The position numbers and the translations under genes were made by a program. 64,000 nt of DNA from contig MU062317.1 in the NCBI GenBank assembly GCA_013265495.1, forward strand, positions 434,001 through 498,000. The letters are read 5' to 3'. Source of the stretch: Vicugna vicugna. Taxonomy: Eukaryota. The notes under the pieces were generated by a model that saw only the letters and a list, made by a program, of their open reading frames with translations, was not told the DNA's origin and did no database searches. Below are positions 3,481-20,120 of the stretch, in pieces. How positions within the stretch are numbered: the stretch's first letter is position 1; every line of letters begins with the position of its first letter.

Positions 3481-3719
3481 NNNNNNNNNNNNNNNNNNNN
3501 NNNNNNNNNNNNNNNNNNNNNNNNNNNNNNNNNNNNNNNNNNNNNNNNNNNNNNNNNNNNNNNNNNNNNNNNNNNNNNNNNNNNNNNNNNNNNNNNNNNN
3601 NNNNNNNNNNNNNNNNNNNNNNNNNNNNNNNNNNNNNNNNNNNNNNNNNNNNNNNNNNNNNNNNNNNNNNNNNNNNNNNNNNNNNNNNNNNNNNNNNNNN
3701 NNNNNNNNNNNNNNNNNNN
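3481..3719. other. Assembly gap (239 N) flanked by G/C homopolymers
   Basis: N run, with a C26 run at 3286-3311 and G runs on both sides of the gap. Confidence 0.99.
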
Positions 3720-15100: not shown

Positions 15101-18100
15101 ACTTAGGGAGCCCCTGGCGTTCGGAGCTGAAATAGAACCCGTCTCCCCGCAGGTCGGCTCTGAGGAAGCCCCCGCCCCACCCCCTTCAGCTCCCTCCAGG
15201 CCCGAGTCCTCCACGCACCTTCGAACCACGGCGGATCCTCGGCCCTGGTCTCAGCCGCGATGTTCTCGCTGACGGTGTGCAGGAGGTCGGCCAGGAGCTT
15301 CTGCCGCAGCGGGGCCCGCTCGTCAGAGAGCAGCTGCCGGGCGGCCTGGATGAGCCCTGCGTGCGGCTTCTGGAACACGCTGAGGAAGCGGCTGATGTCA
15401 CTCACATCTGCCATCGAGGGGGAACAAATGGAGAGGCCACCAGTCCTCGGAGCACCACCTCGGGGAGACGCAAGGATGCCCGCATGATCCCCCCTCCTGC
15501 CCAGCCCTGTCCTGACCTCCCTCAGCCTGGTGCTCCGGGCCTCGGGCCTGGCTGCCCAGGCCGGGGGTGGTGAGAGGACAAATGAGGAGGGAACAGGGCA
15601 CGAGCTGGAAAGTGAAACCACACAAGCAAGTTGCGAGTTGCCGCCCTCCTCCAAGTGAAGTCTGCCGTCTCTGGGTCCCCCTGGAGACCTCATGTCTGAT
15701 CACCCTGCCCTGTCCTCCTGTCCCTGGAGCCTTTCCGCACGTGCCCGAGAGCAGTGAGCCCCCGAGCGAGCACCGGGGTCAGGAGGAGCAGGCGTACCGG
15801 GGACACGGGGACGCTCGGTGCTGCAAAGCCAACCAGTGCCATCCACTCTCCACAGGCTGACAAAGAAAAGTCACGTGATCGTAGCAATCGGAGCAGAAAG
15901 ACAGAGAAAATCTCTGAGACCTAGGGCTTCGGGAAGCGTTCTCAGACTGAACACCAAAAGCATGGGCATGAAAGAAAACCGGAAAAGGGACGAAATGAAA
16001 AACCTTTACTCCGTGAAAGACCCTGTTAAGAAAATGAAAAGACAAACTGCAGAGAAAGAGGAAACGTCTGCAGACCACCGACCCCACGGCAGACTGGGAT
16101 CCAGAGGAGATTAGGGGGAACCTCTCAAAATTGACCGATAAAAAGTCCACTTAGAAAACCGACGAAAGGCACGTGACCAAAGAGGATATTCAGAGGGTAA
16201 ACCAGCCCACGAGAGGGTGGTCAGCACAATTAGCCAGGAGGGAAACACAAGTCAAGGCGCCCGCTCGCCCCCAGATGCTCGCCCCCCAGAAGGGCTAAAA
16301 CAAAACCAGCCAGGCACCCAGAACTGGGGAGGCCGCCCCGCCCCTGCTGTGCAAACAAGACGGGGCTGCCTTTCTGGAAAGCAAAGTGCAGCTCCTTTTC
16401 TTTTTTTTTTAAACAACTTTACTGAGATGGAATTTTCTAGAAGGACAAGGTCCAACAGAGGAAGGGTGCTTGCAACTTGGAGCACACACCAGACGTGTCG
16501 CCTTCCCTGCAGACTGCAGAGTTCCAGCAGAGGGGCGAGGCCACACCTCCGCTACTCTTAGACCTTCTCTGTCCTTTAGGCAGAGAAGGCAGGACCGTCC
16601 CGGTCCTCGGAGCTCTGCGTCCTTCCCGGGGCACCAGAAGCATCTCCTGAAACAGAAGCCAGAGAGCCAGACAGCCCTCCTGGGGGAAGTGCACACACCT
16701 TGCCACTGGCCTAGGTCTCCGGAGAAGCACTTGTCACCCAACACGGCCCCCCCACCTCTGACAGCACGGCTCGAACGCGGCAGCCTCAACGTGCACCCGA
16801 AGGCAGCGTGTCCGCAAACACCGACGCAGACCAGACACCGAGCGTGACAGGAGCCGCCAGCCCTCCCCCGAGAAAGCCCCGCAGCAGAGCAGCCACCCTC
16901 TCCAGTCCGCCTCACCCAGTGCCAGAGGCCTCCCTTCTGCCCTTGGGAGTTACTAGGACACCTCAAGTGAACAGAAATAAAACAAAAGGACGTTTTTAAA
17001 AAGGAAAAAAGACACAGCAAACAACCAATTGGACATCCAGGCTCCTGGCTTTCCCTCTTCTGACTTCAGAGCACGGGGACCCCTCCCTCCCCGAGCTGGT
17101 GCCCCACCCCCGGGGAAGACCCTCAGCACCTCCAAAGCCCCACCAGTTCCCCGCCCACCTCCAGGGTCCCCGCCACTTACAGCCCTGCCAGGTCTGGCCC
17201 GCAGTGAGGAGCACGAGTTCCGCGCCGTCCGGGACGCTGCAGAAGCGATCTGCGGTCAGCTCCGAGCCGTCCTCATACAGACACAGGCGGGAGCCGGGAA
17301 CGGGCAGCTGCGGGGAGGGGAGGGGACAGCAGGGCGGGCACTGCCGGACTGGGTCTCGTGGGCCCACCGTAGGCAGGCAACATACGGGCTTTCCACCTGC
17401 AGCCCTCGCGGTGTACAGGGAGGACCTACGTTCTGAAGACTCACACTTGAGATGCTGTCTCTGGGCATAGAGCACATCAAAACAAGAGCTCCTACTGCAG
17501 ATTGTTCTAAGACGTGGAAAGTCACAAAAATACACACACGGCGGTGACTGCTTTGTGGGAGTCATGACTCGGACTCCTTCAGAACGAGCCCCTCCCAGAC
17601 ACTTCAAAATCCAAGCCTGTTTCCCGAAATGACGGCTAACTGCTTCCACTAGGCCCGTAAACACACCCGCACTGCCCAGCAGGTGCCAGGATGCAGCACC
17701 TCCCGCTCACGTGTCTCCTTGGGCGCTGATTAATTAAGGGGACATCTTACTGAAGATGACTCACCGCCTCTGTCTACAGGACTGTGACCAGCATCTGGGA
17801 CTGTTAACTTGCTGAGTTCTCTGTTGCTTGACTCTGATCAATTTTAAGAATTTTTACAGTAAATTTTTATTCCTCCCCTCACCCCACCTCACACACATAC
17901 ACATTTGCAACCCCAGCTGGTCTAAGCCCAGCCAAGGGAAGTAACACAGTAAGGGTAAGAATGAGGGCTGAAATCCCTACAACCGGGGTGGGAAAGGGCC
18001 TTTAGAGGCCTCTGAGTGCAACCCCTTCATCTTACACCAAGGGAGACTGAGGAGGGGAGAGGCCGCGTGGCTGTGCCCCGGAGCACGCAGCAGGTTAGCC

Positions 18101-19456
18101 GGCGGCCACGGGAACTGGTCTCTGAATCTCAGGCCAGAGCTGTACTGACCTACACGGTCAGAAAGACGGAAATGTTGTCCCAGGTCCCTCCACAAAGTCC
18201 CCCAGCTCTGACTGGGGCTGAGGGGCCAGAGGGGGACTCTGGGAACCCCTCCACAGCACGGAAATAGGGATTCCCTGGGGCCCGGACGTCTCCCACACTG
18301 CCTGGTTTTGAGACAGAAAAGCAGCATCTCTTATTCTCCCCAAATTTCTCCCACGCAGGTGGGCACCTGAGCAATGGGGCAGAGGCTTCACTAGGGCCAT
18401 CTGCTAAGACACGGCACCTCTGCAGACACAAAGCACGGCCAGAAGCCCCAGAGGACTCCAACTGCCCCAGCTTGCGGTAGCCCCCGCCCTCACAGAGGCT
18501 TTGCTAAGAGGCTTTGGGCTCAGCCAGTCCTGGGTTTAAATGCCCGCCGATCCTCTGCAGCTATGGCAGGTTGCTTAGTCGCTTGGCACCTCAGTTTCCT
18601 CATCTGTGAAATGAAGGTTTTAGCACCCAATTCACAGGGCCGCATGTGGACTCCACCACAACCCACGGAAGAAGCCAGAGGGGCCCAGGGACCGGCACGT
18701 GGCCGTCAGCCATGGTTAGGTTCATGTTCTCCACCCATGGGACATGGACAGTGTCCCCTCCCAGTGACCAGGTCAGGACTCAGGGACACACTGTGTGGCT
18801 CGGTGCAGCCTGAGCTCCACCAGTCCCGAGGGTGCAAGACGACAGCTCAGCATTGTTCCATCTCACCAGCAGCGCTCTGGGCAGGCTCGCTCAGACCCCG
18901 AACCCCTGGCTCCCTGCCCCGCGGCGCCTGCAAGTGAAGGCCCCCAGTTCCCCAGCCCCCGGCCCCCCGGGGCGCCTGCAAGTGGAGGCCCCCAGTTCCC
19001 CAGCCCCCGGCCCCCCGGGGCGCCTGCAAGTGGAGGCCCCCAGTTCCCCAGCCCCCGGCCCCCCCGGGGGCCTGCCCTGGGAGGCCCCCCAGTCCCCCCC
19101 CCCCCGCCCCCCCGGACCCAGCCCCCGGCCCCCCGGGGCGCCTGCAAGTGGAGGCCCCCAGTTCCCCAGCCCCCGGCCCCCCGGGGCGCCTGCACGTGGA
19201 GGCCCCCAGTTCCCCAGCCCCCGGCCCCCCGGGGCGCCTGCAAGTGGAGGCCCCCAGTTCCCCAGCCCCCGGCCCCGCGGGGCACCTGCAAGCGGAGGCC
19301 CCCAGTCCCCCAGCCCCCGGCCCCGCGGGGCACCTGTAAACGGAGGCACCCCTTCCGCAGCACTTCCTCACAGCTCTTGCCCGCCACCCCAAACTTCTTC
19401 TGGCTGTGCAGAGCCCGCAGCTTGAACGTCTTGGGCTTCTGAGTCACCGCAGACAT
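5934..19456 (-). CDS. DFFB: DNA fragmentation factor subunit beta (caspase-activated DNase, CAD/DFF40), complete, 341 aa; complement(join(5934..6168,11589..11689,13188..13358,14332..14411,15219..15407,17181..17307,19334..19456))
   Basis: Exons of 123/127/189/80/171/101/235 nt sum to 1026 nt with an open frame. N-terminal CIDE-N domain (KLRALHSQKKFGVAG..LCLYEDG), Zn-binding and catalytic motifs (FSC..DC..RH, NLDH, VHIACHKKTTH) and a basic C-terminal NLS (RRKRPARKRP) are intact. Confidence 0.97.
9669..9785 (+). mobile_element. tRNA-derived SINE (Vic-1-like)
   Basis: ggggagggtgcagctcggtggtggagcgtgcgcttggcacgcaccaggtcctgggttcagtcccc plus A-rich tail. Confidence 0.8.
10290..10860 (+). mobile_element. 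Highly diverged LINE-1 fragments
   Basis: A-rich + strand; aaagaactagcatccaggacatgtaaagcagtcctacaag..aaaaaatgagcagagg resembles L1 ORF2. Confidence 0.5.
11055..11130. mobile_element. Tigger-family DNA transposon remnant (tentative)
   Basis: gggttcctctgtatc..ccatatccacggatttgaccaac resembles a Tigger2-type terminus. Confidence 0.35.
11589..11689 (-). CDS. DFFB: DFFB exon 6
   Basis: GPFDVDDCASRHSINPYSNRESRVLFSTWNLDH; donor |gtgagt. Confidence 0.95.
12950..13090. mobile_element. MER5A-like hAT-Charlie remnant
   Basis: atcgcctgggaagctcgtcagaaatgcaggttctcaggccccacccc..ggtggggcccagca. Confidence 0.7.
13188..13358 (-). CDS. DFFB: DFFB exon 5
   Basis: VTSCASLVGGEAQEEY..YFDRG..LCTPEGWFSCQ; donor |gtgagc. 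Confidence 0.95.
14332..14411 (-). CDS. DFFB: DFFB exon 4
   Basis: GLEARFRNKSGYLRYSCESRIRSYLRE; AG/GT boundaries. Confidence 0.95.
14680..15060 (+). mobile_element. LINE-1 (L1MA/MB-type) 3' end
   Basis: gaatggataaagatgtggtccatccacgcaatggaatatcactcagcc..; gggacagagtttcaggttaggaaggtgagaaagttctgagaacggatggtgg..; A-rich end. Confidence 0.8.
15219..15407 (-). CDS. DFFB: DFFB exon 3
   Basis: YVSDISRFLSVFQKPH..ETRAEDPPWFE; AG/GT boundaries. Confidence 0.95.
15880..16310 (+). mobile_element. Ancient LINE-1 ORF2 fragment
   Basis: aaaatctctgagacctaggg..acaccaaaagcatgg..tactccgtgaaagaccctgttaagaaaatgaaaagacaa..caaagaggatattcag. Confidence 0.75.
17181..17307 (-). CDS. DFFB: DFFB exon 2
   Basis: LPVPGSRLCLYEDGSELT..LTAGQTWQG; cag| acceptor, |gtaagt donor. 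Confidence 0.95.
18010..18140 (-). mobile_element. MIR SINE (diverged)
   Basis: ccccttcatcttacaccaagggagactgagg..gagaggccgcgtggctgtgccc. Confidence 0.5.
18505..18645 (+). mobile_element. MIR SINE
   Basis: gtcctgggtttaaatgccc..cacctcagtttcctcatctgtgaaatgaagg core. Confidence 0.75.
18917..19350. repeat. 48-bp GC-rich minisatellite (VNTR), about 9 units, spanning the DFFB exon 1/intron 1 boundary
   Basis: Unit GGCGCCTGCAAGTGGAGGCCCCCAGTTCCCCAGCCCCCGGCCCCCCGG. The minus-strand CAG recurs at 19334, 19286, 19238, 19190 and 19142, then at 19024, 18976 and 18928, with a degraded stretch near 19060-19125. Confidence 0.95.
19334..19456 (-). CDS. DFFB: DFFB exon 1 (coding part)
   Basis: gaggATGt start at 19456; MSAVTQKPKTFKLRALHSQKKFGVAGKSCEEVLRKGCLRLQ; donor CAG|GTGCCC. 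Confidence 0.95.
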
Positions 19457-20120
19457 CCTCAGACCCTCGAGCCCCGAGGGGTGCACCGGCCTCGCTGGCA
19501 GCGCCGGGGTTCGGCGCGTAATGTGCTACACCGAGGGGAATCAAGAACGCGCGCCGCCCCCAGCCGGGAACTACATTACCCAGAAGTCTAAGGGAAGCGG
19601 CGGCGCGACCCCGCCTTGTGCGCAGGCGCCGCACTGCGGGAACTTCATTACCCAGAAGGCGCGGAAAGCGGCAGAACAATTCCGCCTTGTGCGCAGGCGC
19701 GGCACAGCGAGGCGGGGTCGCGCACGCGCGGAGGCCAGACCGGGCCGGCCCGGTTGTCATGGGAGCGGTGGCCGCGGCCCGGGCGGTGGGCGCGGGCCGC
19801 TTGGGCAATTCCTTCTCTGCCACCGCCACTGCGGCTCGGGGGTGCGGGCCGGCCCGAGGCGGCGGACGAGGCGCCGCCGGAGCTCCGCCGAGGAGAGGGG
19901 CGGAGACCCCCGGGGTCGTGCGGGCGTCCTGACAGGTACGGGGAGCGGCGGGGCGGCCCTGCGGGCCGGGGCAGCGTCACTGCCCCGGCGGCCCGCGCTC
20001 GGCTCCCGCGCTCGGCGGCGGTGCGGGCCGAGCCGCCCTCCCGCAGAACGGCGACCCCACGTCCGTGCCGGCGGGACGGGAACGAGCGGGCTCATTTACC
20101 TCTTGTGTTTCGGGTTTTCT
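19380..20120. promoter_or_regulatory. CpG-island bidirectional promoter shared by DFFB (-) and CEP104 (+)
   Basis: Very CpG-dense. Two ZNF143-type motifs (GGGAACTACATTACCCAGAAG at 19566, GGGAACTTCATTACCCAGAAG at 19638) and two NRF1-like motifs (TGTGCGCAGGCGC near 19617 and 19688) lie between the DFFB ATG and CEP104 exon 1. Confidence 0.9.
19740..19935 (+). other. CEP104: CEP104 non-coding exon 1 (5' end approximate)
   Basis: GC-rich segment ending at donor CAG|GTACGG (19936). The next acceptor is ctcctgctcccataaacag|23451, 13 nt before the ATG. The TSS cannot be fixed from sequence. Confidence 0.65.

Follow-up and report, generated by a model that had tools for sequence, protein, structure and literature searches.

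Which donor is used when a tandem repeat copies the 5′ splice site of an exon into the intron that follows it? This question is raised by DFFB, the gene of caspase-activated DNase (CAD/DFF40), in the vicugna genome, where a 48-bp tandem array repeats the end of exon 1 together with its splice donor. We analysed a window of 64,000 nucleotides from Vicugna vicugna (assembly GCA_013265495.1, contig MU062317.1, positions 434,001 to 498,000), the minus strand of which carries the start of DFFB with its ATG at 19456; positions are those of the window unless a locus is named. The initial annotation of this DNA had proposed that the repeated donors could give in-frame CAD isoforms and that the array length could set their ratio. 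Our analysis indicates that the first donor probably does all or almost all of the splicing, which would leave the second GT donor silent or at most a pseudo-site of minor use. The array is an exon-anchored, GC-rich, G-quadruplex-prone and lineage-variable minisatellite of a known boundary-spanning class.

That class was described by Borensztajn et al. (2006) as minisatellites in which the first monomer lies across an exon-intron boundary, with the donor reiterated in the intron (PMC1557585). In intron 7 of human F7, where a 37-bp unit is present in 5-9 copies, splicing takes place at the first of the identical donors alone; each pseudo-site is able to function, yet does so only once the sites upstream of it have been destroyed (PMC1557585). 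The LMNB2 (100-bp) and PDGF intron 4 (81-bp) minisatellites employ the authentic donor only, and in IFI6 (6-16) intron 2 and CBS intron 13 the authentic site is used along with one or two of the nearest pseudo-sites, which results in small insertions (PMC1557585).

The array repeats the end of DFFB exon 1 and its donor

The coding part of DFFB exon 1 (M1-Q41; 19334..19456, minus strand) encodes the first half of the CIDE-N domain and ends with CAG at 19334, while exon 2 (L42 to G83; 17181..17307, minus strand) encodes the second half and is followed by gtaagt after 17181. The peptides of both exons are identical to those of alpaca DFFB isoform X2 (P0134), a protein that matches PF02017 (CIDE-N) at 1.2e-18 and PF09230 (DFF40) at 2.3e-102 in Pfam, as well as chains 1v0d, 1ibx, 1f2r and 1c9f in PDB at ~1e-37. 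The exon 1 of the window itself aligns to positions 1-36 of the Pfam CIDE-N domain. With both the CIDE-N and the DFF40 nuclease domain present, the gene can be assigned to DFFB, as it had been named before, and the acceptor ccccgcag/CTGCCC (the slash marks the cut) is located at 17307, where exon 2 had been said to start.

Tandem Repeats Finder (TRF) reported a period of 48 over 18917-19352 with scores of 305-710, far beyond chance, in blocks of 4.9 and 4.1 copies with 90-95% matches; a higher-order repeat with a period of 166 (2.0 copies, 92% matches) was reported as well. The repeat register begins at ~19350, inside exon 1, and the first unit overlaps the last ~17 nt of the exon. The exon end CCTCCGTTTACAG/GTGCCC aligns with CCTCCGCTTGCAG/GTGCCC of the next unit, and the intronic array (19333-18928), which is 82% GC, repeats the end of exon 1 plus the donor. 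The proposal that the repeat unit holds both the end of exon 1 and the 5′ splice site was thus confirmed.

Counted from the first base of the intron, the array comprises eight units, namely four clean units of 48 nt, one degenerate unit of 70 nt and three further units of 48 nt, followed by a short tail; all lie on the minus strand. The authentic 5′ splice site CAG/GTGCCC (19328..19336) is cut after 19334, and unit 1 (19286..19333) makes up the first 48 nt of intron 1. Unit 2 (19238..19285) opens with a second CAG/GTGCCC, identical over the 9-mer and cut after 19286, exactly as had been described. Units 3 and 4 (19142..19237) and the degenerate, poly-G-containing unit 5 (19072..19141) each open with CAG/GCGCCC, and these GC pseudo-donors, cut after 19238, 19190 and 19142, respectively, are spaced by multiples of 48 nt and keep the frame, again in agreement with the initial annotation. 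The CAG/GC sites that follow (after 19072, 19024, 18976 and 18928) are out of frame because the 70-nt unit 5 shifts the frame; units 6-8 (18928..19071) carry such out-of-frame GC pseudo-donors, and behind them the tail runs to about 18917. Unit 5 may be an assembly or base-calling error.

The sequence between the two GT donors translates as VPRGAGGWGTGGLRLQ, so use of the second donor would indeed insert 16 amino acids between Q41 and L42, as had been stated. The accompanying remark that no in-frame stop interrupts the array holds as a description but carries no weight as evidence, since long open reading frames (ORFs) are expected at 82% GC and no fewer than five of the six frames have one across the array. 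Such ORFs, which cover the array wholly or for the most part, measure 152-207 aa in the three frames of the minus strand and 197 and 215 aa in two frames of the plus strand. On these grounds, the open frame was rejected as a sign of coding selection. Likewise, a unit length divisible by three is a 1-in-3 event, and parallel mammalian arrays have units or spacings of 37, 39, 40 and 50 nt.

Donor strength, G runs and RNA structure

The donors were scored with a Shapiro-Senapathy-type matrix, and the values are approximate. Both CAG/GTGCCC donors are weak: each reaches ~69, with six U1 pairs at positions -3 to +3 and none at +4 to +6. Beyond the 9-mer, the two sites are also identical over the next 20+ nt. 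The CAG/GCGCCC copies form only four contiguous U1 pairs and have no consensus base at +4 to +6. Real GC-AG donors need near-consensus bases at the remaining positions, a compensation that these copies lack. It is therefore very unlikely that the GC copies work as donors.

Each unit carries four G runs and one G-quadruplex (G4) motif (G3+N1-7 x4) on the sense strand, and of the 37 G4 motifs that the 64-kb window has on its minus strand, 10 fall within this 430-nt array, which can thus be classed as a predicted G-quadruplex-forming minisatellite. The sense-strand GC skew is about +0.3, and the observed/expected CpG ratio is 0.45 in the array versus 1.07 in the promoter core. Folding of the RNA of the exon end plus two units gave a structure no more stable than that of shuffled sequence (z = +0.66), and the idea that RNA structure masks the second donor was dropped for this reason.

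Annotated proteins use the first donor

Donor use was read from 149 DFFB proteins in the databases that span the junction from the end of exon 1 to the start of exon 2. The canonical junction was present in 144 of them. The ground squirrel Urocitellus parryii accounts for another four (P0092 and P0232-P0234), in which seven additional amino acids (VRRDLQR) stand between Q41 and L42; no other annotated protein of the set uses an in-frame donor further downstream at exon 1. The remaining one is an unspliced mouse-type read-through from a Logan contig (P0168). The mouse-type intron 1 of the latter is 171 nt long and open in frame, and its retention would add 57 amino acids inside CIDE-N.

Among the camelids, every protein reaching exon 1 joins Q41 to exon 2 at the 19334 donor, and no repeat-derived insert was present in ~30 isoform models of four species. 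This holds for the alpaca models too, which were built on an assembly carrying both GT donors; they report 17 additional amino acids after exon 2 and no insert from the array. The felid, delphinid and equid DFFB models are all canonical and free of a repeat-derived insert. Searches of the protein collections with the read-through ORF, the C. ferus protein P0005 and residues 1-83 of alpaca DFFB returned no camelid Logan/ENA contigs. In a felid and in a perissodactyl-like animal, the nearest pseudo-donors are out of frame, so that their heavy use would be costly there.

Annotation thus argues against major use of the second donor, although a minor isoform could be omitted by gene models. The in-frame CAD isoforms postulated from the repeat donors find no counterpart in any annotated camelid, felid or delphinid protein. 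Nor did the idea that array length sets the isoform ratio fare better: arrays of five and of eight units both have exactly two GT donors, therefore added length brings no added donors and would at most alter the dose of downstream G runs.

The array differs between camelids and recurs in other mammals

The corresponding genes were fetched from several assemblies, and the names used for the loci L007-L010 rest on the identity of the exon 1 peptide. The window is of the Lamini type, with eight units (one of 70 nt) and an in-frame GT copy at +48. The alpaca assembly (Vicugna pacos GCA_048564905.1, L004) has five clean units, no degenerate unit and likewise an in-frame GT at +48. The two sequences differ by 0.68% over 17 kb, and the array of the window is 166 nt longer than that of the alpaca, a length equal to the higher-order period found by TRF. 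Three units and no further GT, the site being GC, were found in C. dromedarius (L001), C. ferus (L005) and C. bactrianus (L006), and in the last two, 8 nt of unit 1 are duplicated. Both Lamini assemblies thus have the second GT donor, which the three Camelus genomes lack. The copy number does differ between genomes, in line with the copy-number-variable array of the initial annotation, with 8 units in the window, 5 in the 0.68% diverged alpaca and 3 in Camelus, though part of this difference may be assembly error.

Internal units differ by ~1 nt within a lineage and by ~5 nt between Lamini and Camelus, and the flanks are 4.6% diverged. This contrast of within- and between-lineage differences marks concerted evolution by unequal exchange or conversion. 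Unit 2 of Lamini is a chimera of unit 1 and internal units. Metagenome contigs, scanned for an exact pattern of the Lamini/Camelus unit, gave no match.

Outside the camelids, a delphinid (L008, whose exon 1 peptide equals that of Orcinus) has two copies of a 39-nt unit with an in-frame GT at +39, and a felid (L009 and L010, exon 1 as in Prionailurus) has 3.9 copies of a 37-nt unit with GT at +37 out of frame and at +111 in frame. In the perissodactyl-like locus (L007), the spacings are 40-68 nt and GT copies lie at +50, +90 and +158. Sheep (L002 and L003) have one partial second copy at +40 without GT (CAG/GATGGG), and in pig (L011) the region is degenerate and has no GT. Some of the GT copies in these mammals are out of frame yet persist.

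The motif CTCC(A/G)CTTGCAG/G(T/C)GCCC recurs in the intron of the dolphin, the felid and the perissodactyl-like animal, and the sheep copy at +40 has GA in place of the donor dinucleotide. In the camelid intronic copies, CTCC(A/G)CTTGCAG is retained, the sequence with which the exon ends in the other orders, whereas the camelid exon itself now reads CTCCGTTTACAG. Since the intronic copies retain the exon end of other orders, the arrangement is probably old, with turnover lineage by lineage. Judged from these sequences, the reappearance of the motif at 37-50 nt from the start of the intron appears to be an old feature of several mammalian orders. That the duplicated donor motif turns up in one order after another is the side result of greatest interest here.

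Structural setting of the putative insert

In an AlphaFold model of normal DFFB residues 1-90 (predicted local distance difference test score, pLDDT, 84), a helix at 29-39 is followed by a loop at 40-47 and a strand at 48-51. The point between Q41 and L42 falls within this loop, so the insert would, according to the model, sit just after the basic helix. In an alignment of 25 mammals and birds, Q41 and P43 are invariant, which argues for constraint on the loop, although the squirrel model has seven additional amino acids there. CIDE domains are known to pair and to polymerise via charged surfaces (PMC8891305). An effect of the 16 additional amino acids on ICAD binding is conceivable but speculative.

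Proposed explanation of the array and of donor use

The proposed explanation starts from the first 48-bp unit, which overlaps the end of exon 1, so that the exon end and the weak CAG/GTGCCC are reiterated in intron 1. As the comparison of genomes shows, the array grows, shrinks and homogenises via unequal exchange and gene conversion. Unit 1 would be fixed by coding and splicing constraint and the intronic units would drift together within each lineage, being repeatedly refreshed from the exon copy that selection holds in place. Splicing would most probably proceed only or almost only from the first, cap-proximal donor, as experiments have shown for the identical-donor array of F7. In llama/alpaca-type genomes, the second GT would then be a silent or minor pseudo-site, the GC copies would be inert, and the G runs of the units probably serve as ordinary intronic enhancers for the weak donor.

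Several observations weigh against such exclusive or nearly exclusive use of the first donor. Gene models, from which donor use in camelids was read, omit minor isoforms. Since both GT donors share the 9-mer and 20+ nt beyond it, nothing intrinsic disfavours the second. IFI6 and CBS use the first one or two pseudo-sites (PMC1557585), F7 exon 7 is an internal exon whereas DFFB exon 1 is a first exon, and the ground-squirrel insertion of seven amino acids at the same junction indicates that a downstream donor is usable in at least one annotation. It could be argued that the second GT donor is appreciably used in llama/alpaca-type animals, which would place VPRGAGGWGTGGLRLQ between Q41 and L42 and alter ICAD binding or CIDE-N assembly, at a ratio set by array length. 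The shared 9-mer and downstream context of the sites at 19334 and 19286, together with the frame of the second, speak for this, as do the squirrel model with its addition at the Q41/L42 point, the proximal pseudo-sites employed in the IFI6 and CBS arrays (PMC1557585), and the presence of the second GT in two Lamini genomes 0.68% apart. An insert in the CIDE-N loop at 40-47 could moreover be tolerated, but the residues flanking the insertion point, Q41 and P43, are invariant in the 25 mammals and birds. The isoform is found in none of the ~30 camelid models, including the alpaca models made from a two-donor assembly, and the 5- and 8-unit arrays do not differ in their number of GT donors. With no second GT in Camelus, any function would be confined to Lamini; the out-of-frame GT copies of the felid and the perissodactyl-like animal argue for silent copies in DFFB, and the F7 experiments point to the first donor only (PMC1557585). 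Appreciable use of the second donor is therefore unlikely in our judgement, and a functional role for the form with 16 additional amino acids is highly improbable.

Other readings concern the array itself. The intronic copies might be kept for a function in cis, either because tandem U1 pseudo-sites and G runs aid the weak first donor, or because a G-rich non-template strand near the promoter favours R-loops or G4 structures and productive sense transcription from the bidirectional CpG-island promoter. The weak CAG/GTGCCC is kept in camelids, sheep, dolphin, felid and the perissodactyl-like locus, each with at least one further copy of the motif, and the four G runs per unit, the share of G4 motifs (10 of 37) that falls in the array and the sense-strand GC skew of about +0.3 fit such a role. 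The period, the copy number and the GT/GC/GA state nevertheless vary freely among lineages, with the pig copy degenerate; the RNA folds no better than shuffled sequence (z = +0.66), the CpG observed/expected ratio of the array falls to 0.45 from 1.07 in the promoter core, and gene conversion from the constrained exon copy would explain the persistence of the copies without any function. We regard a function in cis as rather improbable, and it is compatible with first-donor splicing from a drifting minisatellite, not exclusive of it. It is also unlikely that the 166 nt by which the array of the window exceeds the alpaca one, including the 70-nt poly-G unit, are an assembly artefact from noisy long reads or mis-polishing. 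The degenerate unit does resemble a normal unit with G-homopolymer noise, the extra stretch is a near-exact higher-order copy (TRF period 166, 2.0 copies, 92%), and sequence of 82-86% GC is hard to read. Five independent assemblies, for their part, carry the array with lineage-specific unit variants, the difference between 5-8 units in Lamini and 3 in Camelus is independent of the doubtful part, and the second GT is present in both Lamini assemblies. A more far-reaching account would combine several of these elements: the duplicated exon end and donor would be ancient in artiodactyls, perissodactyls and carnivores and kept since tandem weak U1 sites and G runs are needed for the weak first donor, and the in-frame 48-nt version of Lamini would in addition give a minor CAD isoform with 16 additional amino acids, a glycine-rich loop by the basic CIDE-N helix that changes ICAD binding or CIDE filament assembly. 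We consider this combination very improbable.

Other features of the locus

Past the array lies a strong GT site, CTG/GTGAGA (18863..18870, minus strand; cut after 18867; value about 86). It is in another frame, overlaps the TGA that closes the read-through frame, and is kept in all camelid loci.

On the other side, outside the array, the DFFB promoter contains a 71-bp tandem duplication (19565..19709, plus strand), which is conserved in camelids (L001 about 1755-1895), in the dolphin (L008 1257-1388) and in the felid (L010 4-142). Each 71-bp unit holds an NRF1-like element, GCGCCTGCGCA, and an ACT(A/T)CATTACCCAGAAG element. A match to ACTAYRNNNCCCR, which we take to be a ZNF143/THAP11-type motif, is located at 19570; the window has 3 such matches versus 0.42 expected.

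Alternative splicing at exon 2 was also seen in the gene models. An alternative acceptor, ttctgcag/CG, lies inside exon 2 (17236-17240, minus strand), and the Camelus Gnomon isoforms P0002, P0032 and P0157 join Q41 to it; its use causes a frameshift (HPRRRG...) by which the second half of CIDE-N is lost. Numerous models from Camelus, as well as older ones from alpaca (P0025, P0138 and P0154), begin within intron 1 and read into exon 2 (…LPSPQ/LPVPGS), so that such proteins are without the exon 1 half of CIDE-N, which implies an internal start or intron retention. Alpaca isoform X1 (P0135, 358 aa) differs from P0134 (341 aa) by 17 additional amino acids (CGAPRTGGLSICSPSMAD...) after exon 2, and the two lengths are thus explained by the exon 2/3 junction and not by the array.

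In C. ferus, a UPF0688 (C1orf174-like) gene (L005 19885-26379, minus strand) lies on the opposite strand within the range of the longest DFFB model. DFFB is ~2 Mb from the chromosome end in four camelid records, and GC-rich minisatellites are common near chromosome ends. The window also contains a run of 239 N at 3481-3719.

Comparison with known boundary-spanning minisatellites

The DFFB array has head-to-tail units in the range of ~10-100 bp, and its first unit contains the exon end together with the authentic donor. The donor is reiterated, with the usable GT form present in one extra copy only and the later units carrying GC. By its sequence, the array can be regarded as a new case of an already known architecture, that of the F7 intron 7 type. 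For the present, it looks like a neutral and otherwise unremarkable repeat within a gene that is well known. With it, the few boundary-spanning minisatellites gain a first-exon example, and the natural variants of other mammals, which differ in GT/GC/GA state, in frame and in the number of pseudo-donors (1 to 4), could test the rule that the most upstream donor wins without engineered constructs. A CAD variant with 16 extra loop residues in its inhibitor-chaperone-binding domain would arise naturally in Lamini if splicing did take place at the second donor, and such a protein would serve as a ready probe of CIDE-N assembly.

Among the known systems, F7 shares with DFFB a first monomer lying over the boundary, a weak donor followed by identical pseudo-donor(s) at fixed spacing, and G-rich units. 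The F7 copy number is polymorphic (5-9); in DFFB, the unit count differs between genomes, in part perhaps through assembly error. In F7, however, GT is present in every unit, the exon is internal and splicing has been measured, whereas in DFFB the GT is repeated in unit 2 only, the exon is the first coding exon, the 48-nt spacing is in frame, and the case is known from sequence and annotation. The IFI6 and CBS arrays are donor-reiterating minisatellites too, and their small insertions correspond to what the initial annotation had proposed for DFFB; alternative use is documented there by transcripts, whereas DFFB is known from gene models. LMNB2 and PDGF have the same architecture but longer units, in unrelated genes. 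A more distant parallel is the intronic variable-number tandem repeat of ABCA7, which is variable in length and has been linked to altered splicing of the neighbouring exon (PMC5954066). The DFFB array is likewise a length-variable intronic repeat, but the ABCA7 repeat does not reiterate a donor and acts on exon skipping and expression.

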